Under the pieces are notes generated by a model. The model worked only from the letters and a program-made list of their open reading frames with translations. It was not told the origin of the DNA and did no database searches. Positions 1,477-61,256 of a stretch of 64,000 bases of DNA are shown here, piece after piece (position 1 is the first letter of the stretch; every line of letters starts with the position of its first letter). The stretch is taken from contig OZ199839.1 in the NCBI GenBank assembly GCA_964304625.1, forward strand, positions 8,728,221 to 8,792,220. Direction: 5' to 3'. Made by a program: the position numbers and the translations under genes. The DNA comes from Kudoa neothunni. Taxonomy: Eukaryota > Animalia > Cnidaria.

Positions 1477-4353
1477 ATGTTGTTTCGATTACTATTATTT
1501 TTTGCATTGTGGGTCGAACAGTGCCATTTCCAAAGTAATGTTACAATGTGTTCCATGAATAATAGAGATATATAGTTTCTAAATTGAACTTGAAAAAACA
1601 GGATGAGGAATATATTTTAGAGTTTTCCTTGCAGAGTGGCTCCACAGAGAACGATTGTTCCGTTAGATATATTGGATATGAAAAGGCAAAATCTGGCACG
1701 AACAGATTTTTTGGGCATTTAGGACAGAAAGGAAAATATCGTTGCACCAGTGAAAAAAATAAACTCACCCTCGAATATATAGACCAAAAATATTACTTAG
1801 TCGTTACCGACGACAAAAATAAACAAGAGGCTTATGTTTTTTATGAAAGTAAACCTTAGTGATAGGTAAAAGGTTTTAATCAATTTATTTTTTTAGAAAC
1901 CACCAATACTAACTTGAAATTGTCCATTGAAAAAGACATTATGGATCTGAAAATCTCTGATCCATTTTCAATTAAAAAAATGAAAGTTAGATTAGATGGA
2001 AACCATGATTTGTTAGGGAGTCCTATATTCGACAACGCGTTGGGGCAACATTTCCATCCAAGATCCACTATGAAGATAACGTCAAACCTAGAATTTGCAA
2101 AATATTACGAAGTGGCTTTGGCGGAATATAATGATATTGATCATTTGATAAACGTGGAAAACTATTCCAATAAGCCAGTCTATCCATTGAAAAACTATGG
2201 TTTCCTTAGAGTTGATGATGAGACCCATAAAACGTTGATATTTGAAGGATTTAACGATTGGGCTGGAGAGCTTTGTGAATTCCGAATCAAAGTGAATAAT
2301 CAATATCTTGATGTAAAATGTGGAGATGGCGAAAATAAATGTATAACTTTATGTTCGAAAGCTAATATATCTGTCCTAAACGGTGTAATATCCGACAAAC
2401 TCACGCTTGAAATTAAAAGTCGATTTAGCAAAGATGTTTTTTCGGTTGATTATGACGGTACATATTTATATAACATAGAATGAAAATATTAAATGAACTT
2501 TTTAGTGAAAAATAGCGTCATAGAATCCAAAAATAAATATTGGAGTCATGAAGTGAATCCCCTTGTAATAAAATTTGCCCCAATTACCACCCCATCTCAA
2601 GTCAATAAATGTGAAATCTCATTCCAGTATCCACTGCTGAATGACGAGCTAGCTAAAAACAACTTTTGTAACAATACCGAATCTATTAAATGTAGTAATG
2701 ATTGTGCATTGGAATATAAATTTGGAAAGGAGTTATCAAAACAACCTATTCTATTGGCAGTGAAAAGAAACGATAATATTACTGAATATGTCCAAATACA
2801 AAAATGTAATTGAAATGCTACCGAATTTCGCTGGGAGTTTGAATTTTATCAAATGTTATATAGATTCAAATGAGATTACTGCAGACGTTAAAGTCCAAAA
2901 ATCTCAGGCGAAAATCAGCTTGACGGGAGAACTTTTTTCGAGAGAGCAAAACTGTATCGTTTATATGAAGTCTAACAGACTACCTTATTATCATCCGGTT
3001 ATGTGCGGAAAATACAAATGCGTCTTCAATTCAAAACAGCCAATATTGGTCAATGGATTACATCGAGGTCACAACTACACATTTAGGGTGGTGTACGAAA
3101 ATGAATACACCGATACCATAACAGAAGAATTTCAAACAAGTAATATATTTATAAGATTATTCTGTCAACTTTAGTCAAAATAAATTAATTTTTACAATAA
3201 AGTGTCCAACCATTTCGACTTGAGTTATAATTGGAGTTCATCAGCCGAACTGGATGTGACTACATCGTTTTTGAATTCAGATAGCGACCACAAATGTCTC
3301 CAATCCAGCTGTATTTACCAACTAGCTGATGAAAATGAGGAGAAATTTGGTTCCAGAACTGAAAAAATGATTTTCATAAAAAAAGTTGCACCTTGTCAAC
3401 AGACTTCTTTCAGTGGCCTCAACAACAATCATATCTATCATATTGAAGTGGAGGCTTTCTCTTGTGGCCATTCTCATTCATCATACGTGTCAGGTATTCG
3501 AACCTCATTTTAATTATCTCGATCAAGATTAAATTTTTATTATTCGAATTTAGGAGACTTTTCAATAATAAACAATAATGAAAGTATAATATTTTCATCT
3601 ATTTCATATTCGATCCAATCACGCCCATTATTACGAATTTCAATAATAGGTACATCTGACGAACACAATAAAGAGGAAACAGTATCAGATATTACACACA
3701 ATTGTAAATAGTTATTGATGGTCATATATTTACTGAAATGAAAATTTAGCATCACCAACAGAAAATGATGGAAAACAAGATATAAGGTTTGTTTAGACGA
3801 TTAATACGTGTATATTATTTTACATTCATTTAGTAAATTGATTGTCTTGTAAAATTGTTTATACCACTGTAAATAATAGACACTCCCAAAGTTGGGTCTA
3901 CTCAAGAATGTAATAATACCCATTGACTTTTTACAGTGCTTCATGATTATTTTATAGCTAATCCAAACGACGATGATCCCATTAAATATAGCAGGTATAT
4001 TAAATTTCGAATAAAACTGAATTAATCACTTTTTATTTAGTAAATCCATTGTTCCAACAAAATATTTTTATCATTATACTAAATTATTTTAGCTATTTTA
4101 AGTATAAAGCGTTACAGGTAACATATCAATATCATAATTAGATTTTTCATTTGAACTTTAGAATTATTACGTGGGTGTCAGTGTAAGTTGTCGCTCGATT
4201 ATTTGATCAAATTTCTAAGTTAAAGTAATCATATTGAACTTTAGTGGAATTGCTTCAGCTGCTCTACTTGGATGTGGAATGTTTTCCTATTACAAAGTGA
4301 AATCAATGGGCGGGACAAAGATTGTTTCTAGAGACAAATGGACTCAAATATAA
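1477..4353 (+). CDS. Type I membrane surface protein with tandem Cys-containing FN3-like domains (about 13 exons); paralog of 40623-43706
   Basis: ATG at 1477 gives the signal peptide MLFRLLLFFALWVEQCHF. Domain-sized exons (ORFs 1584, 1914, 2493, 2788, 3202) are joined by phase-1 GT-AG introns, e.g. 1535-1575 and 3704-3749. FN3-like motifs GLHRGHNYTFRV and GLNNNHIYHIEVEA. TM segment IITWVSVGIASAALLGCGMFSYY, short tail, TAA at 4351-4353. Splicing across 3786-4092 is non-standard (see findings). Confidence 0.75.
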
Positions 4354-5157: not shown

Positions 5158-7200
5158 TTAAACCCTTTCGTTCCCATTGTCCAATTTAGTGGACAAAAAT
5201 TAGTTCGCTTATATATTTAAGTTTATTAATTAATAAAAGAATAATTTATGAATATGATAAACATAGGTTGTTATTCTATGCATTAAATGAGATAATATAT
5301 TAATAAATGTTTATGGTCATTTTTATTTGTGATATGACTCCTCCTTTTTTATAACACTGAAATAATCTAACAAATTTGGAAAAATAAGTATCAACAAGTC
5401 ATAATATGATACTGAAATAATTATATATTGAAAAAAATGAAGTGAATATTTAGTAAATGAAATTTAATTAGTGTGTGATTTAAATGTATCAAAAAACATA
5501 TTAATCTCCACAGGAATATTATAGAGGACATTGGGACTTCGAGAACCTCCGATAGTATATTTTAATGGACCACGATATTGTTTATAGTCAAAAAGAACCT
5601 TCAAAGTCTAGCTGAACTTTTAGAAATCAATTAGACAATTTTTAATGACTTTCTAATTGCCAATTGAGTGTTTCAATTTTTTTTCACTGATGAGTTGATA
5701 TCGAATATCGCATATGAATCAAATCTGTACGCTACTCACCAAAATGCTAATTTCAAAACTGGTGTAAAGGATAGAAAAATATCTGGGAGTTTTGATTATT
5801 ATGGTGATAATAAGAATGTCGAGGTATCAATGTTATTTGTTTGAAACTTGTGAACTATCCCCTTGTTTCCGAGACTTTCTTAATTAAGGAATTGTTTTGG
5901 GCAAATACGTAAATTCTTGAATTTCGCGGATAACGCTAAAGTTATCGCGTATCCTAATTCGTCCAAATACGACAGATTCGTTAAGATTAGACCTTTGTTG
6001 GATTCTGTTATAGCATCTTTTCTAAAGATTGAGCCGAAAGAAACCACTCAATTGACGAAAAGATTATCCCGTTTAAAGATCAATGTAAGGTCAAGCAATT
6101 CGTCCCTAATAAACCAACAAAATGGGGGTATAAAATGTTTGCGAGATGTGGCATTAGTGGTTTGGTTTACGATTTTCCTCTTTACGATGGACGAAAAACT
6201 GTTATAAAGTCTACCGTTGAGCGAACCATATTTTACATATTTTGACAACTGGTTTATATCTATCTATCTATCTATCTATCCCGCTCCAAATCTTCTTAAA
6301 TTTTCTTATAGGTTATAACTAAGAAATATCTATTCTATTGGTACGATACGTACTAACAGAGAAAAAGAGGTTGTCCATTGAGTAATGACAAAGATTTAAA
6401 ACTAAAAGGGCGTGGCTCATATGACTCTGCACATGACTCTGGTAATGGAATATCGATAACACGATGGTTTGATGGGTCAGTTGTCACCCGTTCATCTACT
6501 CATTCCTCGATTGAACTAATCTCAACATCAAAAAGATTCGATAAGTCTAAGAAAAAAATGGTAGAAATTCATTTTCCAGCTGTTGTTAAGGAATATAACC
6601 AAAATAAGGGCGAAGTTGACCTATTAGATATGCTCATGTCACTTTATGTTATGAAGCATAAGTGCAGAAAGTATTACTTTAGAACCTTTTTTGGTGTTCT
6701 AAATACATGCATAATTAACGCTTGGCTACGTTATAAGCGTAATTGTTCCGTGATACGCAACGATAAGAATGAAGTAATGGATTCGTTGGATTTTTTTCTA
6801 AAGTTAGTGAAAGTCTTATCCACCATCAATCAATGACTACTCAAACAAAACGTGGTACACTCTCGCTTAATCAAACTGATGGCAGGAAAAATTACGTCAA
6901 CACCAATGAAAAAGAACGAGATCTAATCCATTGAGTGATGAAATCTGTTTTTACATTTTCCCGAAATAATGACAACACATTCAAGATGTAGGGTTTGTCA
7001 AAAGAAACCATATTTAAATGTATGAAATGTCATTCATATCGTTGTCTTAAGAGAGAAAGGAATTTTTTCTATAACTTTCATAATAATCTGGAAAAATATT
7101 TAAAAATTTTAATTTTTTTAATTGTTCTTTTCGTGCGCGTAACTAAAGCGCGAATATGCCGAGGTAAATAAATTTTAATGTCTACCTTTGTGGACATATT
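5158..7200 (+). mobile_element. Decayed piggyBac (PGBD-type) transposon
   Basis: Frameshifted transposase fragments DRFVKIRPLLD, YFDNWF, GRGSYD, RWFDGSVV, YNQNKGEVDLLDMLMSLY and INAW, plus a Cys-rich tail (CRVC..CMKC) near 6985-7080. Left end TTAA-ACCCTTTC at 5158. The subterminal TGTC..GTGGACA motif occurs at about 5178 and 7180. The right terminal inverted repeat (TIR) was not identified. Confidence 0.85.
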
Positions 7201-10707: not shown

Positions 10708-13700
10708 TTAAAGTCTATCTAACTGTTCTAACAATGTACATGCTTGACAAATTGTTTTGCTGGATATGTGACCACATTTTTGACATTCCGCTAAACCACA
10801 TATTATCTAAATTACCATACTATATAAAATCACAAAGAGTTTGAGGTGCAATCGCGCGTGCGTCCATTGAGAAACACTTTACGGAATTGATAATGTCTAA
10901 TGGAAAATAAAATTTCATTACTAAATGTGCCAATTATTAAAAAATTACTTATAATGAAGTTGGGATTGATTTCCTCGATTTTCTTTATATAATTTCGAAC
11001 ATGCCCACTAAAAATACAATTTTTTAATCAACCAATTTATTTGTTTAGATTCAAAAGTGGTGAAGATTAATTCATTTTAAATTAAAATTATTGAACAACA
11101 AATGATGAAAAAGATTTTCTTTATATAATCTCGAACATGCTCACTAACAATAATATTTTTTAATCAACCAATTTATTTGTTTAGATTCAAAAGTGGTGAA
11201 GATTAATTCATTTTAAATTAAAATTATTGAACAACAAATGATGAAAAAGATTTTCTTTATATAATCTCGAACATGCTCACTAACAATAATATTTTTTAAT
11301 CAACCAATTTATTTGTTTAGATTCAAAAGTGGTGAAGATTAATTCATTTTAAATTAAAATTATTGAACAACAAATGATGAAAAAGATTTTCTTTATATAA
11401 TCTCGAACATGCTCACTAACAATAATATTTTTTAATCAACCAATTTACTTGTTTAGATTCAAAAGTGGTGAAGATTAATTCATTTTAAATTAAAATTATT
11501 GAACAACAAATGATGAAAAAGATTTTCTTTATATAATCTCGAACATGCTCACTAACAATAATATTTTTTAATCAACCAATTTACTTGTTTAGATTCAAAA
11601 GTGGTGAAGATTAATTCATTTTAAATTAAAATTTTGAACAACAAATGATGAAAAAGATTTTCCTTATATATGTCAGTGTTCCCAACCTTTTCAAAATCAA
11701 GTGTTGATTTTTTTGACTTGAACTGTTGATAACTTTGAACAAGACTTCTTATCACATGAAACTTAACATGTATTCCATCAGATCTAACTTACTTATTCTA
11801 CGATGCACTTTAAAAGTTAACATCGTTAGTTATTCACTCCGTCATAAACAGCATTAATAAAGTGAAACTTGTAGTAATCCAACTTTCATTAGGAAACACT
11901 TTCAAATATACGGGGCTAATAATTCGAAAATAAATAATATATAACAAAATTAATCAATAATACATTAGATTCAATCAAAAAAGGGATATATGATTCTAAA
12001 TGAGACAAGATTGAGATCAAACCATTCAAATTCTATTCGGGTGAAGTACACGCTAAATATTATTTTTGATTTTTGTATAATTAGTCATTGCTCGTTGTTC
12101 TTTTATGAAATTAATTGTCATTTAAAAATACGCGATATTGAAATCAAACTACGTCATACCACCCCATCATCTCACCATTATATGTGTCACACCAATACTC
12201 AGAATTTTCCGTGATTCATTAAACGTTCAAAAATTACTATTCCCCACCATAATTTTTTCATTCTTCATTGGTGGAGCGTGGAGAAACAATTATCTATGTT
12301 AGGGTTCTTAACCGGGAGTAAACTTTAGATGATCGAGGGGAATTAAATATCTTCAAAATTAGGTACGGACAATTGTTGAATAATGCGGTATGACATGCAT
12401 TTAAGGATTTCAAAGGAGTTATAATACTCAGAGCTATTAAAATCAATTAAGATATTTGTATGGACAACTATTTGTAAAACTATTAATAAAACTATTATCG
12501 GTCTTTTTCTTTCATGCCTCGTTTATCTTTTTGAGCCGTAGCCTAATGATACTTAAATTAGTATACAACCTTACAGTAGATATAAATTTAGCTTCCAAGC
12601 TAAGGGGAAATTTGGATTTTTCAACCGGCGAAGGGGGTAAATTTAAAAGAACGGTTGAGAATCCCTGATCTAAGTGATTGTCGTTAAGTCGACTGCTTCG
12701 TTGGTGTATTTTAATTTTTTTTTATAATTTAATCAATCTCTTATTTACATATGCTGTATTCTTTGTTCTGTATATTATATTCTATATAAAGGAGGGTTTG
12801 ACAATAAGAAGGGTGATTTGAACACACTACGTAAGTATTTTAGTTGTATTTTCATATAAAAATGCAGTTTAAGGCGGATATTTCGTGAATTTTATTTTGG
12901 TATATTTTAGTTAAAATATTTCTGAATAAATATGGTAAAAAGAAAGTTTAAAAGAAGACAGTAATGTAGATTATGAAATTTGTTATATATTCGATATTAT
13001 AAATAAAATATTAGGATTTCATTATTCATGAAAAATATCTTTGACAATAATTAGATTTAAAACTGCGGAGGCTATATGCACGGTAATTTTTTTAATCCTA
13101 ACAACTCAGTCGCAAACCGTATACAGATTTAATTTGTTCATATCTGCTAGATTTAATTATTTCTTATCCATCGCTTCTCGTTCGCAGAGGTCAGAGGTCA
13201 GAAATAATTAAATATAACAAAAACTAATTTCAATTTAATATTATTTACCATGCAAATGACCACCTTCTACCTACAATTTTCTGGTAATATTTTTAATTAT
13301 AATATTATACGATTATAATAAAATAAAATTTTAACAAAATAATCTATTGAAGATTTACCGATAAGCAAATTTCGCATATTTGCACTCAGTGGCAAAATAT
13401 TTCAATTCGTTGTAGAACGCATATAAAACTATCTCTTTCTCATACGAATACAGCAGCGGTTTACAACGAGTCGTAGTGGATTTCGATTTAGCCTATTGTG
13501 TGAGTAACAATGAAACAACAAACAGTTGAGAAAACTGCCACATCCCAACTATTACTATATACCGATAAAGGAAGTACACATTTTTCTAGTCGATGTATAT
13601 CTCCACGTAAAACTAGCAAATAAAAATATTACATATCAAAAACAAGCAACAAGTTACTATTCATTAGAACAGTTTCAGCCACGTCGTCAGCATTGTGCCC

Positions 13701-30798: not shown

Positions 30799-33700
30799 CT
30801 ATTTTACGGATAGAAAACTAAGGAAAATATGTTTAAGGAGGATGGACAGTTTATTCAGCGTCAAACAAGTTTGATTTTCCAATGGATTGATTTTTTTCAC
30901 TCCGATAGCGGTATCGTCATAGAAAGTGATTTTGTGTTGACTTTGATCGAGATTGGTTTCGGACTTTTGGGGAGTGGATAAATTGTTTATCCTATCGAAA
31001 ATAATACAGGATCGCCTCACAACGGCGAGGTCATCCTTCGGCACCAAGATTGTTTTGGCGTATTTCTCTTTTACTTCATCTTTGAAATTTGGCAGGAAGA
31101 ATATTGCGCTTGAGGTTGCCATCCCAATCCAACTCAATAAGATTTTGCATTTTCGGCAATAATACGCCGCACACGAGCTGCAAAATCAATAGTAGATTCT
31201 GCAGGTTTTACGATGAACCGGCGGCAAAGAATGTCCACATCACAATAGATCATCCACGATGACATCAAATGGACAAGGTACATCAAGAAATCCACCTTTG
31301 AGCTATTCCAAAAAAGCGTCGCCATACATAGACCGATACTAGAACAAACGTAACCGCACATTAGAACAAACTAATTTCCTCATATCAATGGAAAAAAAAA
31401 TTAAAGGCCACTTTTATAGCCACTGGAAAAATGACATTGGCTATCTCGAACGAGCCTTTTCTAAACATCATTACAGAGGTGTTGTTGATGCAAGTGCCCT
31501 CGGGAAAGATGATCACAGGTGGTTTGGAAACATTTCTCGCATGTTCACTCAGCAAAATTAGCTACATGACTTTCTATCGAGCATTTGACTCCGCTCGAAA
31601 AGATGTGGCCAGAGCGTCGGAAAAAAATTTGAAACCAATCCAAAAAAACCCACCCTGAGATTGTCCGATCATTGTGAAAAACCGCAACGAACACAATATA
31701 ATAGCATCCAAAGGAGTGGTGTGATTGGCCACACATATTCCACTTTCGGGCATGTGTCCTCTAAATTCGTAGATACCATCACATATGGTTTATTAGCAAA
31801 TTGAGTGTCACCTTCCATGGACATGAATTTTGATACTAATAGAAGCAGTGACCATTCGGCAGATGATAACGTTGAGGAATCGTTTGATTTTGGGTATTTT
31901 TCTAATTTAAAAATCATCCGTAATCAGAAACTAGCATATTATAATTGGTTTAATTACAAAAAATCAGGCAAAAATGCAAAAATAAGACCGATCCATGCGA
32001 CAAATATCAGTGTTATGGTAAACATAATAATCCTAACATATTGAATGATGATCAGCTGTGATGGAGTTTGAATAAAACAGATGATTACCTGTTGGGAAGT
32101 AATATAAAGTAGCGATAGAAAAATCCGAGACACCAAATAACATGGAGAGTCATACTAAAGAAGTGGCATTCAAAAAATAAACTCATATTGGTGCATTACG
32201 TTTCTCTGTAATAGTCTGGCATTGACCGTCTGAGCATATTCCATAATCTTAATTCTTGGCATGAAAATCGTTTGGTAACGTTATCGTCAACAATAGCCTA
32301 CAATTAATTTTACTTTTATTGGCAATATTTCCAAAACATATATACACACAAATGAGATATTAAATATTGACAAAGTACTTATTTTTAAGAGTAAAAATAA
32401 AATATTATTTTATTAAAATAATTTCAAAAAATCATCAAATTTATTTGAAATAAGATTATTTTGATAAAATCTTTGATAATGAAAGAAAAGAGAATTTACA
32501 CTGATATTGCAGATATTAGAGATTTCCCCTCTATTATTAGCAGGCGCATTTGCATACATGAAATTAGTTTGAAAAATTTCATTAGAATATTGACCTATAG
32601 TTTTCGATATTTAAAAAAAATATAACAACACCTACATGAGTATATTGTTGATGAAATTTTGAATTAAATATTCCGATTAATAATTGTTAGGCACAAATCT
32701 CCCTCCCATCAAGAGTGTAATCTATATGAGGGTTTAAAAGCAATAGAACAACGTTTATTGTGTTCCCGAAAAACTCTGAAGGAACAGTCCTAAATGAATA
32801 GTCTCTACTAGATAGGGTTATAATTATTTCACATGAGTTACTTTTGAATAATTAGAACATGTTATATATTTATTACTTATTGAATCATAATATACTTTAA
32901 GGTTTCATTAATACAATCGTGTCTCGATAGTGCGTAGTTATCAAATATCTCTTGAATTTTGTAACCATTCATAAATTTTGATGCTGCAAAGTAATAATTA
33001 CATTATTATCTCGTAAAGTACATGTAAAATTATTCATTAATGACAAAATTAATATGAAATTGCTCAGCATTGTCTAGTAATTTTGTATTGGGTAGAAATT
33101 CTAGGGTCCGGAACCCCCCTTTTTAACTCGACAGTGAGCAGTAAATTTGACCGTGTCAAGAATACAGAGGGATGTTGACGAGGAATTAAAAATTATCAAT
33201 ATATTATAACTCAATAAAGTCAATGATAGTTTCAAAAATGGGCCACTTCGAAAGTTGGTCATAGTAACAGAATAATTATATGTTACTTACAGAGAACATT
33301 AACCTTCGGTAGTGACATACATAGTGATAGAATAATTAGTTTCTAAAAAATGAAAACAAATAAAAAGGAGATTTTTTATGGTCTAATTTAATAACGTGGC
33401 ATGTACCAGTGAATATAATAATTAATGCCGGAAGGGACAATTAGACTTCAAAGTGTCCACAGCTATAATTCGGGTCTTAACAACTCATAGACAAACCTTT
33501 ATAAGTGAAGATCAAAAACGGTCTGTGTGATTTAGATCCTATTATGGATCGAAAATAAACTATTCTAAAAGGAAGCGAAATGCAGAGAAAAATAGCGGAC
33601 TACTTCTCTCTCTATAAATATGTAATAAAGATATAATAAAAATGTAATAAAGATATAATAAAAATGTAATAAAAATATAATAAAAATGTAATAAAAATAT

Positions 33701-36700
33701 AATAAAAATGTAATAAAAATATAATAAAAATGTAATAAAAATGTAATAAAAATATAATAAAGATATAATAAAAATGTAATAAAGATATAATAAAAATATA
33801 ATAAAAAATGTAATAAAGATATAATAAAAATGTAATAAAGATATAATAAAAATGTAATAAAGATATAATAAAAATGTAATAAAGATATAATAAAAATGTA
33901 ATAAAAATATAATAAAAATGTAATAAAAATGTAATAAAGATATAATAAAAATATAATAAAAATGTAATAAAGATATAATAAAAATGTAATAAAGATATAA
34001 TAAAAATGTAATAAAGATATAATAAAAATGTAATAAAGATATAATAAAAATGTAATAAAGATATAATAAAAATGTAATAAAGATATAATAAAAATGTAAT
34101 AAAGATATAATAAAAATGTAATAAAAATATAATAAAAATGTAATAAAAATGTAATAAAGATATAATAAAAATATAATAAAAATGTAATAAGGATATAATA
34201 AAAATGTAATAAAAATATAATAAAAATGTAATAAGGATATAGTAAAAATGTAATAAAAATGTAATAAAAATATAATAAAAATGTAATAAGGATATAATAA
34301 AAATGTAATAAAAATGTAATAAAAAATATAATAAAAATGTAATAAATATATAATAAAAATATAATAAAAATGTAATAAATATATAATAAAAATATAATAA
34401 AAATGTAATAAAAAATATAATAAAAATGTAATAAATATATAATAAAAATATAATAAAAATGTAATAAATATATAATAAAAATATAATAAAAATGTAATAA
34501 GGATATAGTAAAAATGTAATAAAAATGTAATAAAAATATAATAAATAATAAATAAAAATATAATAAAAATGTAATAAAAATATAATAAAAATGTAATAAG
34601 GATATAGTAAAAATGTAATAAAAATGTAATAAAAATATAATAAAAATGTAATAAGGATATAATAAAAATGTAATAAAAATGTAATAAAAATATAATAAAA
34701 ATGTAATAAATATATAATAAAAATGTAATAAAAATGTAATAAAGATATAATAAAAATATAATAAAAATGTAATAAAGATATAATAAAAATGTAATAAAAA
34801 TATAATAAAAATGTAATAAAAATGTAATAAAGATATAATAAAAAATATAATAAAAATGTAATAAGGATATAATAAAAATGTAATAAAAATATAATAAAAA
34901 TGTAATAAGGATATAGTAAAAATGTAATAAAAATGTAATAAAAATATAATAAAAAATGTAATAAGGATATAATAAAAATGTAATAAAAAATGTAATAAAA
35001 ATATAATAAAAATGTAATAAATATATAATAAAAATATAATAAAAATGTAATAAATATATAATAAAAATATAATAAAAATGTAATAAGGATATAGTAAAAA
35101 TGTAATAAAAATGTAATAAAAATATAATAAATATATAATAAAAAATATAATAAAATGTAATAAAAAATATAATAAAAAATGGAAAACCCATGATTTAATT
35201 ATATAAATGAATATAGGTTTAAAAACGGGCCAAATTTTTGATTTTCAAAAGTTTCAAGGGGCGGATTAAATTTTCTGTTTAAAAGCAATAATAAAAGTGA
35301 AACAAAAATAATACAAGCATAAAATATAATGAATGTGTAATATGAAACTGATTCTTGTGGCAGGATTTTGTATATTTCAATTTTGGGGCCCCAAAGAGAT
35401 TACGAACCACCCAACGTCTATTGTATAATTCAAAGAAATCGCGACGTTTGTTAAATTTAAGGTTGTAATTGAAAAACTACAATTTTTCTCAAGTAAAATA
35501 TTCCCAGCTTATTTATTTGATCATAAAAAGTGGTGATTATAGCCTATCATTTTAAATTTTAGCATCATATCAATTAAACTCACCAGATTAAAAATTAGAG
35601 AAAATCAATTTAAACTATAATTTTATACAATAGAGAATTTTAAATTATTATAAAACATATGAATTAAATAAAAAATTTAAACATGTATCATATCGATTCG
35701 TACGTTTTACATTCAGAATCTTGTCATATTGATTAGTGATTAGTGATTAATGATTAGTAGTTAGTGTGTGGATATTCTCTTTTGTTTCAATTAAGATAAA
35801 ATAAAAACGTACAGTAATTAAATAAGGTTTTTTTATTAGCATTCATCAACTCAAGTAACGCATTGATAGGCTCCATATAAGTCAACACAATTTCGTTTGC
35901 GCATTCGTGTGCAAAGGAGTGCGAGTCCAGTTTTGGCTTAGAAGCGCTGTATTATTAGGATATCGCAGACCGTGCTTTGATGATCCTACAATAGATGGTT
36001 CACTCGAATTTTTTTGTATAACAAGCGCTCGCACATCAAGATTGCGTAGTAAGTTGGCAGTCACAATTTACTGCGCAACACGACTGTAGCATACATGTTT
36101 TATTGAATTTAACAAAAAAATACTTTTTCACCCCTATATAACAATAAATTTTCGCATGAAAGGGTTAACAGATTTTTTAATCTCAGCATCTCCCTTTTAT
36201 GGTTAATGTACAAAGTTTTACTTGTTAAAATCAATTATTCTCTCCTTATATTTATGGGTATTGAAGTCAACCACGACCAACACTATACATAGGGGATTTG
36301 ATTTTTACTTGATTAATTGCAATGATAGATTTGTTTATATATCCGAGAATAAAATACGCGCATCAATAATTCTATTCCAGTTGAGTAGTTGTTAGGGGTA
36401 ATATAACGAAACGCGATAGTTTAAATAGCTCAAAACTAATTCCGGATTTGTCCACTTTTCAATCTCAATTATATGAACAAACAAATACATCCACTGTTAT
36501 ATAACTATAATCAACTATTACGCTGCTAATAAATAATATTTCATCGAAAAAATATCAAACAAGGAAAAGACTTGATAACCATAACGAAAATAATTAATCA
36601 TTTCAAAGCAGCATATTTATTACTAAGTAACTCCCCTTAAAACATTAACTATATTTGTGTTTCAATTTTATTTATTTATCAATAATACTTATCTCAAGGT

Positions 36701-39369: not shown

Positions 39370-40622
39370 ACGTTATTTTTTATAGTTGGACTAACGAATA
39401 ATTGAATATGCAATAAATATCGATATTGCAAAGTTTGATATAGGGTATTTGGCTTTTTTTTTAATTTCTGTAGTCAACATTGTAAAATTTTACCTATATT
39501 TAATCTTTTAATTTAACTTATATACGAAAAATATGAAATAACATTTAGTTGATGCAATTTTGGTAAAATTCAGAGTCTTGTTGTTCAAACGTAGATACTT
39601 CAAATGTCAGCCCGACTAATCCTTTCAGTTATACATTCGAATGTCCGGCATTGTGAGAGAACATTTTTTTGGTGAAAAGTTGAAATTATTCAATATTATG
39701 AATCATCTAGATCAATCTCAAAGGCCAATAAATGACTGTAGAAAGCCATAGAATATCATGGATTCTGATATTTTGAGTTTTATTCAAATTAGGATAGATT
39801 ATTCTTCTCTGAATAGATTTTGGTCAATCAATCTGTTTAAATCAGCTCATATGTTGCTACTACACGTAAAGAGATTATAAATGAAAAGTATATCCTAATT
39901 TAAATTGAGATTACGACCGGATAATGTCAAAATAAGAAAAAAATATATTCATGAGTTTTCCATTATCAATCAGGCAGAACTTTTGCTGATGATCTTAAAA
40001 TCACCAATTTCATTTGAATAAAATATTCATTTAAAATTTTAAGACTCTTTTGTTATAAAAATTCACTTCCATCGGAAAAGCGGGAGCGTTCATGATAATA
40101 TTGTTTACGACTAGCTGGAACAATTTTATGGGGTAATAAACAGCTATAGGAGAGAAAATATTAAATCATGGCGCGGGCGCTCTTTTTTATGAACAATGTA
40201 CTCAATGAACATATGTAATAAAGAACGAATAAAATTAAAAGGAAATGAAACAATAAAAAAATTCACACGTCTGCCATTGGAAAATTGATAGACACACTTC
40301 TTGATACTTCAAAAAATCATGATCAAAAGTTCGCGAAAGGTATATGAAAAGTTCTTATACTGTAAGAACGATATTCTTCACATTCATAATTAAATAATAC
40401 AATCAGAATAAACAATTTTTTTATTAAAAAATAAAACATTTACTCTTTTAGCGCACACGAAAAAATCTATATTCGGCGGTAAAAACTCAGGCCTCGATTT
40501 TTTATACAATATCGAGACCTTATCGTGTATTTAAATGACCAATCAAAAACTATCAGGCTAATAAAAAATTTCTTTTTAATAATTTATAGATTTATTATGT
40601 GATCTTTTATCAATGCCCCAGT

Positions 40623-43600
40623 CTAATTTTTCTTTTTGAAAACCACAAATCCGATCGCACCTGCAATCATAATTCCAATAATCGCAACCACTATTATTCT
40701 AAAATATTTTTATTTCAAACGTAAATAAGTTTTCTATCCATACATGATAAAGGTTTTAGAACTAAATAATAGATTATGTAATTTTTTAACAAGTAAAAAA
40801 ACCTTGAGCTGCTTTTTGCACCTAATAATAATAATAATATTTAAAAATATTATTATGTAAATCATGTTTTACCTTGTTCAATAACAGCCTCGCCATAAAT
40901 TGAAGAATCCTTAAAGCCGTAAACAATCAAATGATAACTGTTACCATCTGCTATCCTGTTTATTGTAAACGACTTGCAATACGGAAGTGTTTTGCATCCA
41001 GTATCTCTTGACTTCATGCATTTTTTTACTATTGGCATCGATTTGGCACTTGAATTAAGTAGTTTCCACTTGCATCTTGATTTGTCATTGAGACTAGAGG
41101 GAAGTGTATTTTCAATATTGAATACTTCACCATCTCTTGTTATAGTTACAAATATTATTTTTTCCCTGTCTGTTGGGTTTCCTCTTGGAGCCGCTATTTA
41201 TTTATGTTAATATTTATATTATAAAATATCTTAATTACTGGGTAATATAGTGATTTCTTCGGGTGAAGATTTTTCCACAGCAGTGATCAACACTTTATAT
41301 TCTTCTTTTGCATCATAATCATCGAATAAAATCGAACTACATAATGGAGGCGATGCACATGTGTTTGAACTTTGAGGAGCTGCTGTAGTAGTAGTTGTTG
41401 TAGTAGTAGTAGTAGGCGTTGTAGTAGTAGTAGTAGGTGTTGTAGTAGTAGCAGTAGTAGTAGTGGTAGATGCAGGTGTTACAGCTGTATTTGTTTGAAT
41501 TTCGCCAGTTCTTGCAATATTTGACCTAATAACTGTTGATTTAAGATTAGAAAGTTGGGTGGTGCCAGTTTCCGTTTGACTAGAGTTAGGTTCGGTCTCA
41601 GTTGGTGTGTTTGGTAGAGTCTGAGGAGTTTCCGGAGCAGTTGATGGTATCTCGGGTGCCTCACACGTATACACGTTATCGAACTTGTCATTATTCTTTA
41701 TTTTGATTGTATAATAACAAATGGCTTCTGGAGTTTTTTTCGATAACTGAACATTCAACTCCAACCCTCTCTCAGTATATTTTGGTGAAATTTTCAATCT
41801 TGCCAAATCTTTTCATAAATTATATATAAATCATTTGAAAAATATACTTGTTGTGACAGTTTCATAAACATGCTCTTTATAATCTTTGTCAGCAACGACT
41901 TTAATATCATAGCGAGTGTTTGGTTCGAGATCAATGATGGTTATTGACTCGCTACACCTTCCTCTACAAGGGTTCGTCTCGGTGCATGTAGCAACGTAAA
42001 ATGTATTTTTTCCTGCTGGACTTATGTAATACTCACAGTTTGGCTCATCTTTCTTATCTTGCCCTTCTGTTCCTGCAATGGCTGTTAACGTAGTTGTTGA
42101 CTCTGTTTTAGTTGGGGCTGTTGTTATAAAGACTTTATTGCTTTCTTTTTTTTCTTTTTAAAATTTATAGCTTTAATCATTTTTTCTTATTAATTATTTA
42201 CCTGTCCTTATAAGTATTTGTTCTTTAAATTGGGGTGGATCGTTTAAACCAGATTCAATTTCTATAATATAAGGTTTTCCCTCAGCAAGTCCTTGAATCA
42301 CCACATTTGTGCAGCTGTTGTTGCAATTACTCCCTCCAGTAACTTGAGTCGCAGAGTTGCAATTTGTAATGGTGGAAGAGGATGGTTTGATTTTATCAGC
42401 CGCATAATGTTTGATGGTGCATGTACCAAACTTCGTAACTCCTTCTGCTGTAGGTTTAAAAAGTGCCACGTTCAGTGATACTCCTTGGTTTGTATACGTA
42501 GACAACAATCCAACTTCAGTCTCTGCAATTGCTATATAAATGAATTATAATATTTTATTATTTACAATATAGATACCAAATTTGTTCTGAGTAAATCCGT
42601 CTATACTAGCAGCAGCAGTTTTTGTCAGGTCGTGATTTCTGGTTTGAATTAAAACTTTGTATATTTCTTTTGGTTCAGTTACGGTAAGTTCAATGTCCTT
42701 ACACAGTGCGTAACACTTTCCATCGGTATTACCACATCTAGATTCAAATGACTGAGTATCTCCTGTATTTTTCCCATCTTTAATACTGAAGACGCATATT
42801 TCTGACGATAGCATTGAACCTGTGAATTTAATTAGCAACTTTTTAGTATCTGCTTGTTTTGTAACATAATATTGAGGTTCGTAAATAGCCATGTTTTTCT
42901 TCATATATGTATTTAGCATATGATAAAAGAAACTGGGATAATTCGTACATCTCATCTCATAATGGGGAATTAATAGATCGAATTCCAAAGCGTCAGCTGT
43001 GTTATCCACATCGCATAATGTTTCTTTTGTACCACTATTAAACTTAGCATCTTTATAAAAGATAGGACAATCAACTGGAGTACAAGTTTTTGCGGAAAGT
43101 TTTAGTTTCTTATCATTATCACCATGAGATATTTTTACTTGAGGATTTACTATTAATGCTAAAATTTTTAATCATTAATTAATTAATTCGAATTTTTATT
43201 TGATTACGTTTTGACAACCCAAACACTTTTCCCCCTTTTTTTGTGTACATCCCCTTTAACATCAGATTTAACTGCAGCAGCTTTTACGTATATGTATTTT
43301 GTTCTTGGTGAAAGGTTGTCAAAAGTCACATCGCTTTCTGGCTTGGTACATTGGATTATACATTCAGCAGTTTCGTCAGCTTCATGCCCAGTGCAACGTG
43401 CGATTTCGCCAAAAGCAGCTGCTGTGGTTGGATTTGCGAGAGTTGTCGCCTCATTAGATATCATAATACGGCAAAATTTACCAGCTGCATATTCTGTACC
43501 ACCAAGTGTACGTTTAAATTGATTTTTTTTACTAGCGTTGTCATAAACAATTTGGTAAGTTAATGTAGCCTCTGGCGCAGATGCAGCCTGAGGTGCTTGA

Positions 43601-43706
43601 TTTGCTCTTACATAAAGTAATTTAAGAAAAACTAATATAAATTAAATTAACTACAATAAAGTAAATATATACTAAGAAAGTAACGCAGCAATTGAATCTT
43701 TAACAT
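40623..43706 (-). CDS. Type I membrane surface protein with Cys-containing FN3-like domains and a Thr-rich mucin-like insert; paralog of 1477-4353
   Basis: ATG 43706 with signal peptide; phase-1 domain exons (ORFs 43464, 43009, 42508, 41806); FN3-like motifs FDNLSPRTKY, IQGLAEGKPYIIEI and IIDLEPNTRYDIKV. An 18-nt phase-2 microexon precedes the TM IIIVVAIIGIMIAGAIGFVVF and tail KKKN*. One apparent frameshift near 43210-43255. Confidence 0.75.
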
Positions 43707-46700
43707 GATTAGTAGTATTACAGTAATCAATGGTTTGAGCCGAATACATGAATACCATAATATGATCAAAACTTTTCGGATGCAAGTGAATACGAATCAA
43801 AGATATTTCAATAATTAACTCGATAATATTTATTTAACGATGAATTGGTTAATATGAGATTAATTATTAACGAACATTTATGTTCATATATTATTCGTTA
43901 AAAAATTATTTTACCCAATAATTAATTTTTATGATAATAAAATTTTATCGACAAATTGATAATATAAAATAAAATGGATTTTCATAAAAAAATTCAACTG
44001 TAATAAAAAATAATATTTTAGCCTGCATATAATAATGATACGATCATGATTACCAAGGAGATGTTCGTAAATCAGCATTGAGTTAGAAAAAATTAATAAA
44101 TTAGCCCAATTATTTATATTAAATGATCTAATTAATTGAAAATTAGTATCTGAATTATTTGGTAAATGTTAAGTCAGGGGACTTTATAATGAGCATACAT
44201 TTTAACAAAATTACCATTAGGAATCGACTATTGTAGATAATGATATAGCATAAATTTAAAAATTGACACAAATAGTTAGAAAATGCTTTCATGGCCTATA
44301 ATCTATTTTTATATATTCTATTATTTTTAAATGTCGAAAGTTCTAATATTTCTTAATAGTAGTATATAACTAACACGCCAAAGAAGTTATATAGCATAAT
44401 GGCACGTAATCCATATTTTCACAAAAACATTATATTAGATGTTTAAAATTTGTTTATTATAAATAAATAATATCCAACAAATATCAAATCGAGATCTAAA
44501 CTGTAAACTGTCCAAGTTTTTTTTTCAAAACTTCATAATTCTAAACTATATATCTTAAATTATGCATTTCATATACTAATTAAATCCACATTCTTCTCTA
44601 TTATAAATCGAATTATAACGAAAGAAATCAAATTATTTTTAATTAATATAATCTTGAGCTATTGACGTGTTTAAAAATTAATGAGTGAATAAATAATTTT
44701 GTTAAACGAAAAACTGAAAAAATTTTGCAGAGATTTTAAATTCGAATTTTACCATAAAAGAACAGATTCTGATAACTTTTTACAATATTACTAAATTTAA
44801 AAAACACATTTGATTTCTTAATTTAAGGTATTTCTAAAAATATTGGACTAATTTAAAACTGATCCTATAAAAGGGAAACTTTTATAAATATAACCGTAAA
44901 CATAGATCTATATTTCAAGATTTCATTAAGGTAACAATGTTTGTTTGCTAATAAAAGAACATACATTCACTAAAAATGCAATGAGATAAACGCTGATCAA
45001 ATGGATCAACCATGAGACCCTGCTAGAATTATCTTTGGATATTGCAAGGCGAGCCTGCAAACCTTTTTACATAGAATCGCAACTATTTAAATTGGGATTT
45101 TATTGCGAAATTCATTATTAAATCTACATAGAAAATAATTTAGGACGAAGAAAATGATTACTACGAATTTTCTTTCCAACAAATCATATAATGGCAGTTT
45201 CGGAATTTACGCAAAGAATATCGCTAAAACCATATTATGTATTAATTTAATATTCTATATATCAACACAAATTTAACCAATTTAGCTTCTTGTAATTTCT
45301 AAACAGTTTTAAAAGTCTATACTTTATACAGTCGATCACCCTGATATCAACAATAAATAAGTATGTCCCATTTTAATCTAACACTTATTTAAATTATTCT
45401 TTTTTAATAAATAAAAATATCTTAAATAATTATGTATCATCATTAATCATTTAATAATATGTTTTTACGAAATTTCGTAATCAATAGATTTAAATAATTA
45501 AGCCTCAAAGGCATTTAAAACGACGAGGTTTACCATAGAGGGGAAAAACCTAAACGATGGTTTATAATATTTATATATAGTCAAAGGTTACTCTTATGTA
45601 TATAACTCCCAATCACTTAATCTATTCTATTTTCGAGGGAATTGAATTGAGATCCAATCTCAAACGTTTGCCAGCTCAGAAGCCAGAGTAGTGCATCATT
45701 TATACGCTTTTCAAATTAACATTAAAAGACATATGTGTTTTATAATTCATAGTTCTAATTATTACTTGCTTGAAAGCTTTTAATACAAGATAACGGTTTT
45801 ATAACCCATAAAAATATTAATTTCGATAACGTATTGTCAATATATTTAAAAAATCTTAAATTTCCAAAATTATAAAAAAATTAAATTGGTTCAAAAAAAG
45901 TGGAAATGTAAAATTTGATAGATAAAATATAATAAATTTATGGAAGAATTAATTGACTGGGATATAGCCATTTCATTTATTTTATTAAACATTGAAAATG
46001 TATGCATTCAATTTTTAAAAAAAAAATATCTTTAATTTTTAGGATTCGCCTCGGGAAGATAAATATCCTGATAAATTTATTTATTCGTGGAATAGTTTTG
46101 TTAATGACACTGACTTTGAAGGATCAATTTCCGACGAAACTTCTTCCAATATTTTAAACAAAAGAGGTCCAGAAATTTTAAAAGTGATTTTATAATTTCA
46201 AAAGATTTTTATTTAACACTTTTTCCAAACTAGATGCAAAAAATATACATAAAATTTTCAAAATGCTGAAAATATCTTTAACACGGAAACTTAACGTTTA
46301 CATTTATTCAATCCTAAATCTAACCAAGTTTTCCGATTTGATAGAAAAAAGTAAATCTGTGGCGAGTTTGTGGTTTCGCAATTTCTGAAATAAAGTTATT
46401 TTTAGTTAATGATGATTTTCCCCACAGAAGTTATTAATGTTCGATGGCATTTATATAACTAATAATAAATCATCTCATTTAAGCACCTGGCCACATGCTA
46501 CGTCGGTGCAAAGACCTATATTTTTTTAATGAATAATTTAATATATTGACTCAATATTATCTTATCATCTAATATCATGGAATTCAAAATGTTATCACTC
46601 TAGGGACAGCTTTTAATTTCCTGGGCACTGTCATTCAGGGGTTAATTGGGTGAAATGTTAAATTAACTCTACGAAATTATTTAAGTATTCTAATCGGTTT

Positions 46701-47638: not shown

Positions 47639-49050
47639 TTAGATATTGTTTATGAGGCGACCAAGTAAATACATCACTCGATGAGTATTTATAATGTTAT
47701 TGTGAGCAATATTACCAAAGACATGAATGGAACTTTTGAATTTCTTGTTCAATTCTACCAATGGGTAGCAACTTTGTAGTTCATCCTTTGTCAGAGTTCC
47801 ATCTCCATACTGAGCCGGGTTTTTCTCGATATTTAGTAAATTATGAGTAACTGAAAGGATTCCTTTAGTAATTGTGGGTTCTCCCAACGAGAAAACACAG
47901 TCAAATGGTACTCCTATTTCGGTATTAGACCAAATTTCTGGAATGGTTAAATTTTTGAATAAATTGTAATTATTTTCGTTGGTTTTTCTTAAAAATTCGT
48001 CGATATGCTTGATAGTGTATGAAGAATCAGGTGTAATGAACAGGATCTATAATTAAATTTTAAAACAATTTTTTAAATAGATGACAATCATGAGATGAAT
48101 ACTTTGTTTTCATCAAAGTACGAATTACTCGGAAAGAGGAACTTAATGGAGGGAAAATTTGAAAGCAATTTTGATACCGAAATACCATCCCCCAAGTTCC
48201 ATTTTCCGTTAGGATCACCAAACATATACCCAAATAATGAATGGAATGAACCGGCGAAGGGCGTGCTTACACTTATCCATTTCTTGATGTATTTCTTTTT
48301 CCATAGATTTGTTTTGGTGTCCAAGAATTTACGTATAAGAGCTCCACCCATGCTGTGTGAGATAATCGTGACTTTTCTGTGAAAACCACGATATAATGTT
48401 TCAATTTCATTGTTAAGGTTGTGAAAATAATAACTCAAATATGGTTCAGCTAGGAAAATAGTTACAAAATGATGTTGACTTGAGATTATTACTTGCAATC
48501 AGTCTAAAATCATAAGGAGCTCCTCTAAGATCGTAATCTCGAGTATATCCCAATGTTTCCATATAATCAATAAACGCGTTAAAATAATTAGGCCACCAGT
48601 CTGGAGGATCAAGCGATGGATGTTCAACGCCCGAAATCTGGCCAAATTCATCAGTTTCAACCTCTACACCTTCATTATTTTCCATCATGTTTTTCTCCGG
48701 ATTATAGTTAGTTCTTGATGAGTTAAGTATTATATAAAATCAGTAATAATTACGAAAGAAAGTAAAATCGACAGGCTATTGGAATTTCTTCGCTGTTGCT
48801 GAGCCAAAGCAGTGTCTTGTTACTGATAGTTGGACAGGAAGATTGATTATTCATCTGGGGTTTGTAGGTAACGTAGAGTTTGCTTGTTAGGAATCCGGGT
48901 ACTATGATAATATATTATTAATAACTTTATTGTAAAGTTACCTAATAAAAGTGGCGAATTCAATGAGAATTTGGTTGTATTAACTTTGTTATAATTTATT
49001 GTTTGGCACAACAAGAGGGCCAATAGAAAGAGAAAAATTTGACGACTCAT
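47639..49050 (-). CDS. Secreted group XV phospholipase A2/LCAT-like enzyme, catalytic triad intact
   Basis: Signal peptide; PLLLVPGFLTSKL; LGYTRDYDLRGAPYDFR; nucleophile ISHSMGG; STPFAGS; GDGTL (Asp); AHNNII (His); four short GT-AG introns. Confidence 0.9.
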
Positions 49051-55563: not shown

Positions 55564-57098
55564 CTAGTAAGATACCGGCACTAATTCGGTAAATCTCTTT
55601 ACAAGATGTCTAAGCGTGGTCATTGTATGCTTATTAGAAAGAATATCGTTGTGATGCATAAATTTAAAGATGAAGAGAGAATTGGTGTTCAACCAATTTC
55701 GTTTCATGAGTGGATAACAGCTTAGAAGTTCATCATAACAGAGGATTTTATCACCATATTGCGTTGGTTCGGTGTAGAAAACGGTGACGAAGCTAGCGTT
55801 GAAAATGTTTAAACTAGTTACAGTACTAATTCCGATAGACATGAGACAAGAGAATGGAACTCCTATCTCGGATTGATTGTTCATCCAAATGTCTGAAATA
55901 TTTAAATTATTCATTATATTAAACAGTTTTTCATCGTGAGCTTTCTGAAGTACGGTGGAGTTCTTCAATGACCACTTTTTGGTAAATCTTTCGAAATATA
56001 TCTAATATTATTTTTAAATTTTAGTTCGACATAAACTTTAAGGGAAATTTTAATACCTTATCTTCACCAAAATATGACATGCTTGGATAGAGGAATCTCG
56101 TTGTAGGAAATGTCAAAATAATTTCATTTATTTTCATTTCAGGTGGTAACCTCCAATTTCCCATAGGGTCACCATATACGGATGTCACATATGCGGCAAA
56201 TGCACCACCAAAAGGTGCAGATATGCTCAACCAATTCTTGATGTACTTATTTTTCCATTGCTGAGTTTTATTTTGGAAAAATAAGTTCAAAACAACTCCA
56301 CCCAAGCCGTGTGTGATTATGCTCACTTTAAGGCCGATTTCCTCATATAGACGTTCGATTTCGTTGGTGAGGGATTGAAAATAATAGCCCAAGTGTGGTT
56401 CAACTTTAGGAGAATTTGAGATGAAACATATATCTTATTTTTGAGAATTTATTACTAGCAATCAATCTGAAATCAAACGGAGCTCCTCTAATGTCGTAAT
56501 CACGTTGATATCCATTTTTGACCATGTATTCGATAAATGGACCCCAATAGCTTTTAAACCAGGTTGGAGGAATTTCTGCTGGATGTTCAACTGAAGAAAC
56601 TCTGCCAAATTCGCCGGTTTCAATGACGACTCCTTCTGGATTTTCCATGATGTTCTTCTCTTGGTTATATTGAAGTCTGGCCAAATTAAATCATTAATAG
56701 AACATCAACTGAAATACTTTAACAGGTATGCACGACAATCAGGTGATAATTCGTCGTTTACACTGAGCCAAAGTAAGGTTTTATTGGTTTTTGCTGGACA
56801 ACCGTACCGAATTAGAGTTTCTGAGTCATACGTAACATAGAGCCTGCTTGTCATAAATCCTGGGACTAGAATTTCGATTTCCAATAATCACATCAGTAAG
56901 CGATAATTTAATAATACCCAACAAAATCGGAGATTTTGTGCGGCATGAAATTCTTGTTTTATTTTGTTGGCATGGTTTACCACCCCATATATGTGAAATC
57001 CAATCTGACGAACAAATAATCAACAAAGACAAACACAAACCTAAACCATAGCATTATCATCATGTAGAATATTTAGCGTAGATACAAGACTTTGTCAT
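55564..57098 (-). CDS. PLA2G15/LCAT-like paralog with the catalytic Ser replaced by Gly
   Basis: ATG 57098 (13-nt first exon, intron 57085-57041); SPILLVPGFMTSRL; GYQRDYDIRGAPFDFR; ITHGLGG; SAPFGGA; YGDKIL; HHNDIL. The four downstream introns sit at the same positions as in 47639-49050. Confidence 0.88.
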
Positions 57099-60339: not shown

Positions 60340-61256
60340 GCTGGGGTCGGACGCGGACAATTTTTTTAAATAATATGTCGGACACGGATAAAATTTATTG
60401 AACGTTGTGCCATCCTGATACGACCCATAAGTCATTGTATTCTTATTGCAAAGATTTGGTTTATTGCCAAAAATTCGCTCTTGTGAAACCTGTCATTCAG
60501 ATATGCTACTCAGACCAGAAAGTAATATTGACTCATTTATGTTCCGTTATTATAAATGTAATAAAAAGACATCACTCAGAAAAGGGACGTTTTTTGAGGG
60601 GGAAGTGTACGTTATGGAAAATTTTTTGTATGATTTTTGCAAGCGTTAATGATATTTATATGAATTTTGATACTATAATGAGACAATTGAAGATCTGCTC
60701 AAGAGAAACAGTTTGTAGCTGGAAAAATTAGATACGTAAAATTAACATGGATTATCTTAATATCGAGAGTCCTTCAATTGGTGGCCCAGGTATATTGTGC
60801 AAATACTATTGTGGTAGACTGCTTATGAATCAAAATGAGTGGGTAATTGGAGGAATCGATGAAGATGAAAATATATTTCAACTGTTGACTGAGGTTAGAA
60901 ATCAAGCCACATTGGAAACGATTATCTCTCAATATGTCTTAGAGGGGTCCACCATTTGGACCGATTTGTGTGGTGGCTACAATAATCTAAGAATGAGGGG
61001 CTATTATCATGATGAAGCTAATCATAGTATTGAATTTAAAACGTCTGATGGAGAAAATATGAACAAAATTTGGGCAATTTGGGGTGATCTCAAACGCAAG
61101 TTCTATTATATAGCTAACAGAAAATCAGAATTAATGCGTTCCTACTTGGCCGAATACCAATTTAAAAAAATATTAAAAATGATGGACTTTCAAAATATAT
61201 ATCTGTTATTAACCAAGTTTATTTACATTCATAAATATGCTTCTTTTATTCTATGA
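60340..61256 (+). mobile_element. Merlin (IS1595/ISXO2-like DDE) transposase pseudogene
   Basis: GLL..CETC..M..CNKKTSLRKGTFFEG; IGGPG; KYYCGR; WVIGGI; RNQATLETIISQYVLEGSTIWTD..GYNNL; NHSIEF. Frameshifts and an in-frame stop are present; TIRs were not resolved. Confidence 0.9.

Follow-up and report, generated by a model that had tools for sequence, protein, structure and literature searches.

The closest described counterparts of the introns reported here are the [D1,2] spliceosomal twin introns (stwintrons) of ascomycete fungi, known from the Hypoxylaceae and Xylariaceae (PMC9024468, PMC12403724, PMC8469720). In these, as in the candidate sites of the myxozoan Kudoa neothunni considered below, an inner intron (U2-type in the fungi) lies between the first base, G1, and the second, T2, of the donor of an outer intron; the introns are short, and splicing of the distal sites in a single step keeps the G in the exon and shifts the frame by +1. 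The fungal one-step product is an infrequent mis-splicing event (PMC9024468). Overlapping [D1,2]/[A2,3] stwintrons resemble the Kudoa sites in that the two introns overlap at the middle G of AG/GT (PMC5587772). The authors of stwintron studies saw no reason for the class to be fungal only (PMC6616335). The stwintron research papers that we found were fungal, and a search of titles and abstracts, in a literature that lacked most subscription papers, returned no animal stwintron.

At a classic AG/GT recursive splice site, the whole GT follows the first junction. Recursive splicing and EJC-repressed re-splicing, described in Drosophila and mammals, share with the Kudoa sites a first reaction that rebuilds a 5′ splice site for the second (PMC8184009, PMC6224609), but classic recursive sites reside in long introns, and the EJC represses re-splicing at junctions, which counts as an error (PMC8184009). 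In Kudoa, by contrast, the GT straddles the junction, the introns are about 45 nt long, and the second step would be needed to keep the frame. A different likeness is to the micro-exon genes of parasites, such as the MEGs of Schistosoma, whose surface or secreted proteins are encoded by short symmetric exons in series; these genes are not described with nested introns, whereas the Kudoa microexons encode just one part, the stalk, of an FN3-like protein with several domains. A micro-exon antigen of Tetracapsuloides is cited in PMC8481699.

The K. neothunni assembly was built from HiFi reads, with a QV of 48.5, an intron length of 49 bp and a GC content of 30%, and very few RNA reads mapped to this species (PMC12239612); its annotation is therefore not RNA-based. 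Here we describe a gene of this tuna parasite, a relative of the jellyfish, with two sites that, judged by their sequence, probably work like, and probably are, [D1,2] stwintrons.

Results

Anatomy of the gene

The window is a 64,000-nt stretch of contig OZ199839.1, with a GC content of 29% and introns of about 45 nt (the median for the genome is about 43-49 nt). It carries an intact, single-copy gene on the forward strand, with exons spanning 1477..4353 and no internal stop. The predicted product of 699 aa consists of a hydrophobic N-terminus, FN3-like domains, a stalk encoded by microexons, a single TM helix and a short tail. The anatomy, like the reading frames and the paralog conservation described below, is read directly from the DNA, and its elements are listed here with the candidate introns in place (F1 and F2 are related subfamilies, see below).

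1477..1534 (+): exon 1, 58 nt, ending in phase 1; hydrophobic N-terminus, read by eye as a signal peptide
1576..3493 (+): five large phase 1-1 exons with Cys-containing FN3-like domains (1576-1848, 1897-2457, 2506-2805, 2864-3139 and 3203-3493); introns of 48-63 nt
3554..3703 (+): first stalk exon or exons, 150 nt as one exon or 30 + 54 nt; both readings have an open frame
3750..3785 (+): stalk microexon A1, 36 nt, phase 1-1
3786 (+): candidate site 1, G1 of the split outer donor
3787..3833 (+): site 1, putative inner intron, 47 nt, GT..AG; the only other internal AG is at +10
3834..3879 (+): site 1, putative remainder of the outer intron, TAAAT..AG, making a 47-nt intron with G3786
3880..3909 (+): 30-nt stalk microexon B; phase 1 scores 2.7 in the coding model, phase 0 -0.4
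3910..3957 (+): ordinary phase-1 intron, 48 nt, between the two sites; absent at the same place in F1 and F2
3958..3993 (+): stalk microexon A2, 36 nt; coding model score 3.9 for phase 1 vs -1.1; phase 2 closed
3994 (+): candidate site 2, G1 of the split outer donor
3995..4040 (+): site 2, putative inner intron, 46 nt, GT..AG, with no internal AG
4041..4092 (+): site 2, putative remainder of the outer intron, TAAAT..AG, making a 53-nt intron with G3994
4093..4117 (+): 25-nt exon C, phase 1 to 2; F1 and F2, too, have an exon of this type after site 2
4162..4182 (+): 21-nt exon D, phase 2-2, where the TM helix begins
4245..4353 (+): last exon, with the remaining TM helix, a short basic tail and the stop

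Within the first stalk region, the segment 3584-3649 is a stop-free, 66-nt GT..AG sequence whose length is a multiple of 3, and could be a phase-1 intron, coding sequence or an alternatively retained segment. If it is not an intron, the product is 721 aa long.

The large exons of the window gene gave no significant Pfam match. Among 26 domains of the superfamily, five matched Pfam fn3 weakly (best E 0.0007), whereas a profile of the 26-domain alignment matched chains of titin (E 8e-12), fibronectin and Dscam. One Cys-containing domain is encoded per exon in the related genes. By these sequence comparisons we class the superfamily domains as FN3-like. Relatives of the window gene have 25-30% identity to it, and the genome search found no close paralog. 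Protein word searches, which see proteins of similar length only, returned no relatives of its product, a broad protein profile search returned generic FN3-repeat proteins only, none corresponding to these loci, and in neither was a transcript-derived protein of these genes found.

The surroundings of the gene include a broken DDE transposase remnant just downstream (5400-6900; Pfam DDE_Tnp_1_7, E 6e-11), an ISXO2-like transposase fragment (60405-61256; Pfam DDE_Tnp_IS1595, E 6e-13) and two LCAT/phospholipase-like paralogs (48088-48498 and 55564-56392, minus strand). There are also a 136-nt unit in five copies of 98% identity (10977-11670) and a 1.6-kb AT-rich tandem array (33614-35178; period 11/22/33) that produces a spurious ORF of 543 codons on the minus strand. 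Elsewhere in the genome, an 18S rRNA match covers the 3′ third only and is preceded by unrelated AT-rich sequence; it is apparently a truncated copy.

Splicing of the two sites

The initial annotation had described each site as a G, an inner GT..AG intron (47 and 46 nt) and a TAAAT..AG segment, at 3786-3879 and 3994-4092, and our reading agrees with it base by base. Translation bore out the exons of 36, 30 and 36 nt and the polar stalk that they encode in frame with the TM helix. We also reproduced the predicted consequences of one-step splicing, which runs into a stop at site 1 and causes a frameshift that misses the TM helix at site 2; the use of the distal sites in one step is a +1 frameshift at both. 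As had been proposed, taking out the inner intron restores a good donor, and all ectodomain introns are then in phase 1. The twin-intron model gives this phase to all introns between exon 1 and exon C, and it is only under this model that A1 and A2 share one reading frame. Together with the coding model, the mean hydropathy of -1.66, against +0.73 in the alternative reading, speaks for reading exons B and A2 in phase 1.

The strength of the splice signals was ranked with a splice and coding model that was self-trained on about 310 kb and gave 339 predicted introns (median 43 nt). At site 1, the inner donor GTTTGT is weak (9th percentile) and the inner acceptor is at the 81st percentile; the rebuilt donor GTAAATT and the outer acceptor are at the 70th and 37th. 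The inner donor and acceptor of site 2 are at the 52nd and 94th percentiles, as are its rebuilt donor (GTAAATC) and outer acceptor, respectively. Introns of 85-105 nt make up 2.4% of the 339, whereas both halves of each site are of ordinary length. A branch-point search of the predicted introns of the genome showed weak TAA enrichment near -16 and no usable consensus. The window sites fold no better than shuffled sequences (z -1.3 and 0.1) and have no terminal symmetry.

We propose that splicing would proceed as follows. By intron definition, the GT would pair with the nearest strong AG in the first reaction, and the inner intron of 46-47 nt would be taken out. The leftover G would then join TAAAT to form the donor GTAAAT, and the second reaction would remove the outer intron of 47 or 53 nt, the G included. 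The resulting mRNA would join the symmetric phase-1 microexons and reach the TM helix. The order of the reactions, the intermediate and the anchored form as the main product are what we infer.

Two related routes do not apply here. According to a rule quoted in PMC9024468, an [A2,3] route requires G as the first base of the next exon, and this route is closed in the window gene, where the next exons begin with A (3880) and C (4093). The sites are also distinct from a classic recursive AG/GT site in that the AG of the inner introns is followed by TA.

The locus by itself does not demand two-step splicing, because mutually frame-compensating ordinary GT-AG routes also reach the TM frame. Conventional GT-AG paths that do so number 1626, of which three are simple: donor 3791 plus one-step splicing of site 2; a 10-nt microexon (3834-3843) plus one-step splicing of site 2; and two 10-nt microexons (3834-3843 and 4041-4050) plus acceptor 4102. 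One possible explanation of the locus, then, is ordinary GT-AG splicing with such microexons or with donor 3791, the frame shifts cancelling before the TM helix. The three simple routes are open as far as the helix, ATT/GT is found at the same offset in both outer halves, and the gene finder picked the 10-nt microexon at site 2 although the twin option was allowed; in other paralogs, microexons that start with T after a phase-2 intron are real. On the other hand, the required donors are poor (10th, 1st and 7th percentile), and these routes would put exons B and A2 in a hydrophobic frame that the coding model disfavours. The modelling of the window locus by itself thus favours the twin-intron reading, short of proof. 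The window gene by itself leaves room for other readings. It is the comparison with related genes that decides.

Comparison with subfamilies F1 and F2

Genome searches identified two subfamilies of related genes, F1, with 67 matches from about 66 genes, and F2, with about 14 genes, whose last domains are about 17-24% identical to that of the window gene. Where examined, each F1 or F2 gene has two candidate twin sites in its stalk. Exon A (24-27 nt) comes before site 1, and exon B (39-81 nt) lies between it and site 2; exon C (phase 1 to 2), exon D (phase 2-2) and the TM exon follow. In the window gene, site 2 likewise precedes exon C, but an ordinary intron separates its two sites. By sequence, the window gene is a distant, single-copy third type with non-adjacent sites, and the family comparison bears on it only by analogy. 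Further paralogs are without the sites, and their last domain is joined directly to C, D and the TM exon.

For an anchored search of F1 and F2, the base before the GT and the base after the inner AG were left free, and the next exon was used as the anchor. The bases were left free so that the outcome would not be preselected. Hits were counted if their distance from the last-domain exon of an F1 or F2 gene was as expected, and were matched to the family lists by hand. The inner intron was preceded by G and followed by T in 14/14, 25/25 and 5/5 cases, that is, at 44/44 anchored sites, which share ancestry and are not 44 independent events; the same pair of bases flanks 24 of the 339 ordinary introns (7%). 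The base preceding the G varies, the introns carry indels, and in F1 exon B the third codon positions of the phase-1 frame are variable. This comparison shows, at the sequence level, that the G and the T were retained while the surrounding sequence diverged. At all 13 sites that were fully read, one-step splicing with the G retained throws the reading out of frame, and at 12 of them a stop follows within a few codons. Removal of the whole element, G1 included, gives the best frame reading in F1 and F2; the window gene differs in having compensating conventional routes.

These paralogs also bear on ordinary GT-AG splicing with microexons. A GT comparable to that at +10 is present in only 2/5 F2 copies, F1 site 1 has no GT early enough for a microexon, the microexon at F2 site 2 would contain a stop, and an 11-nt microexon at F1 site 2 is possible in only 2/6 aligned copies. 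We consider conventional splicing of the window sites unlikely.

At F1 site 1 the outer intron is 41-42 nt long; where it is 42 nt, and open in some copies, its retention would keep the frame. Ten distinct copies were read by hand, and because seven of them have a stop or the 41-nt length, the outer segment is not under coding constraint. The sequence suggests that this outer intron arose from exon sequence whose junction spelled GT. Such an origin fits the look-alike sequence G/GT..TTTAG/T that occurs before a real microexon in other paralogs.

One such look-alike is in the window. A second FN3-like single-pass gene, with a Thr-rich insert, lies at 40600-43760 (-) and has a near-identical copy elsewhere in the genome; in its stalk, G/GT..TTTAG/T belongs to an ordinary intron in phase 2, after which comes a real microexon of 18 nt, with no twin intron. 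Two further observations concern individual copies. In one F2 copy, site 2 has a long internal, non-terminal hairpin (z -3.3) over the AG/T junction, which could favour one-step splicing. Two F1 copies have single-base indels in coding exons, one of them in an A run, and are either pseudogenes or affected by assembly errors.

Extent and age of the layout

A genome scan and an inspection of paralogs had been suggested in the initial annotation. The paralogs in F1 and F2 have the layout, as described above. The strict pattern is not enriched genome-wide (18 matches vs 32 in a reversed control), but a two-by-two count over the genome does show enrichment: G before and T after the inner intron were found together 40 times, T without G 101 times, G without T 45 times and neither 323 times (odds ratio 2.8, p = 3e-5). 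Stalk sites of the superfamily account for this excess. The 40 matches with both bases comprise 21 from F1, 3 from F2, 1 from the window gene and 15 others, where about 14 are expected by chance; with paralogs collapsed, the odds ratio is about 1.6 (p = 0.09). The gene finder called twin introns in 13 of 135 chances and 13 of 2146 decoys; several of the loci having been preselected by the G and T pattern, this enrichment is not counted among the main evidence. A genome-wide splicing habit is rejected, as matches outside the superfamily are at chance level, and the sequence comparison indicates that the layout is a property of the stalk of one superfamily, not of the genome. A mobile symmetric element is likewise unsupported: there is no terminal symmetry, and the sites are confined to the stalk of related genes.

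The similarity of the two window sites had been taken as a sign of a duplicated module. We obtained the same identities, 19/36 between the two 36-nt exons (p = 0.003 vs shuffles) and 15/17 between the junctions. The outer halves are alike as well (p = 0.015), but the inner halves are not (p = 0.17), so that the idea of a duplication is supported only in part. The inner intron of site 2 is nearer to the inner intron of F2 site 1 (p = 0.004, uncorrected, 28 comparisons). Because the pair of sites is also present in other subfamilies, the pair probably predates the window gene. On these sequence comparisons the layout appears to be an old stalk feature of part of the superfamily that was inherited through gene expansion.

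Discussion

We put the probability that both window sites, which lie in the stalk region of a single-pass, FN3-like surface protein, are [D1,2] stwintrons at about 0.73. The layout in F1 and F2, the invariant G and T, the stops in rival routes and the intron-sized halves argue for this reading of the initial annotation, and the conventional routes that are possible at the locus weaken it, as do the microexon chosen by the gene finder at site 2, the shared ancestry of the paralogs and the look-alike G/GT..TTTAG/T at ordinary introns of the superfamily.

Apart from ordinary GT-AG splicing, three alternatives can be envisioned. One scenario is that introns of 94 and 99 nt are removed in one step from a non-canonical GG donor, giving the same mRNA with no intermediate. 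The protein would be identical to the two-step product, a GG-AG intron is known in human CPSF3 (PMC4176328), and many non-canonical sites are reported for tunicates (PMC13326754). This scenario, however, leaves unexplained why there is a strong internal acceptor one intron length in, an invariant T and donor-like bases. Moreover, no GG-AG intron of normal length between exons of at least 60 nt was called in the 310 kb or so that were modelled, and all of the apparent GG introns are of double length. We regard a one-step GG donor as quite improbable.

Another scenario, which we rate a shade lower, is that truncated, secreted ectodomains produced by one-step splicing or by retention of the outer intron are the main products, or that the 3′ end of the gene is decaying. 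Stops do occur just before the TM exons in the one-step and retention routes, and a few F1 copies have frameshifts or stops, but the TM exons and the tails are open and conserved across paralogs, F1 exon B is variable at third codon positions of the phase-1 frame, and the window gene is open across 699 codons. Finally, an assembly error that added one base to each donor, turning ordinary introns of 93-98 nt into apparent twin introns, is highly improbable: coverage is low and the reads are contaminated by host (PMC12239612), but this is a HiFi assembly with the high QV given above (PMC12239612), the same extra G is present at 44/44 paralog sites on three chromosomes, and the internal AG/TA structure would be left unexplained.

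The two-step [D1,2] reading, if it holds, sets the Kudoa sites apart from the fungal stwintrons in several respects. The host is an animal, and the candidate sites were read from its DNA. They are paired in stalk microexons of a single superfamily, whereas the fungal stwintrons occur across unrelated genes; unlike the sister stwintrons of the Hypoxylaceae, they appear to have spread by gene duplication and not by insertion at new positions; and the window sites lack the terminal inverted symmetry of the propagating stwintrons of that family. Loss of the EJC as an explanation is rejected, since Mago nashi is present in the Kudoa genome. It is found twice, 39 kb apart and with identical scores (C2:11544138-11584194), which indicates a recent duplication or an unpurged haplotype.

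The sites lie directly before the anchor exons, a position that fits a regulated gate: full two-step splicing would give the anchored protein, and one-step splicing or retention of the outer intron would lead to a stop shortly upstream of the TM exons and, were the mRNA to escape nonsense-mediated decay, release a shed ectodomain. A one-nucleotide frame switch of this kind had been suggested in the initial annotation. We think that this extension of the two-step reading is doubtful.

If the [D1,2] reading is true, the myxozoan case would be the first animal stwintron in the literature that we searched, and would show that selection can keep ordered, donor-rebuilding splicing in an animal whose genome has retained a core protein of the EJC. 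Standard gene finders must then get the membrane anchor wrong in about 80 candidate host-facing proteins of this fish parasite. If the gate should also prove true, about 80 surface proteins would be switched between anchored and secreted forms by stage or by host.
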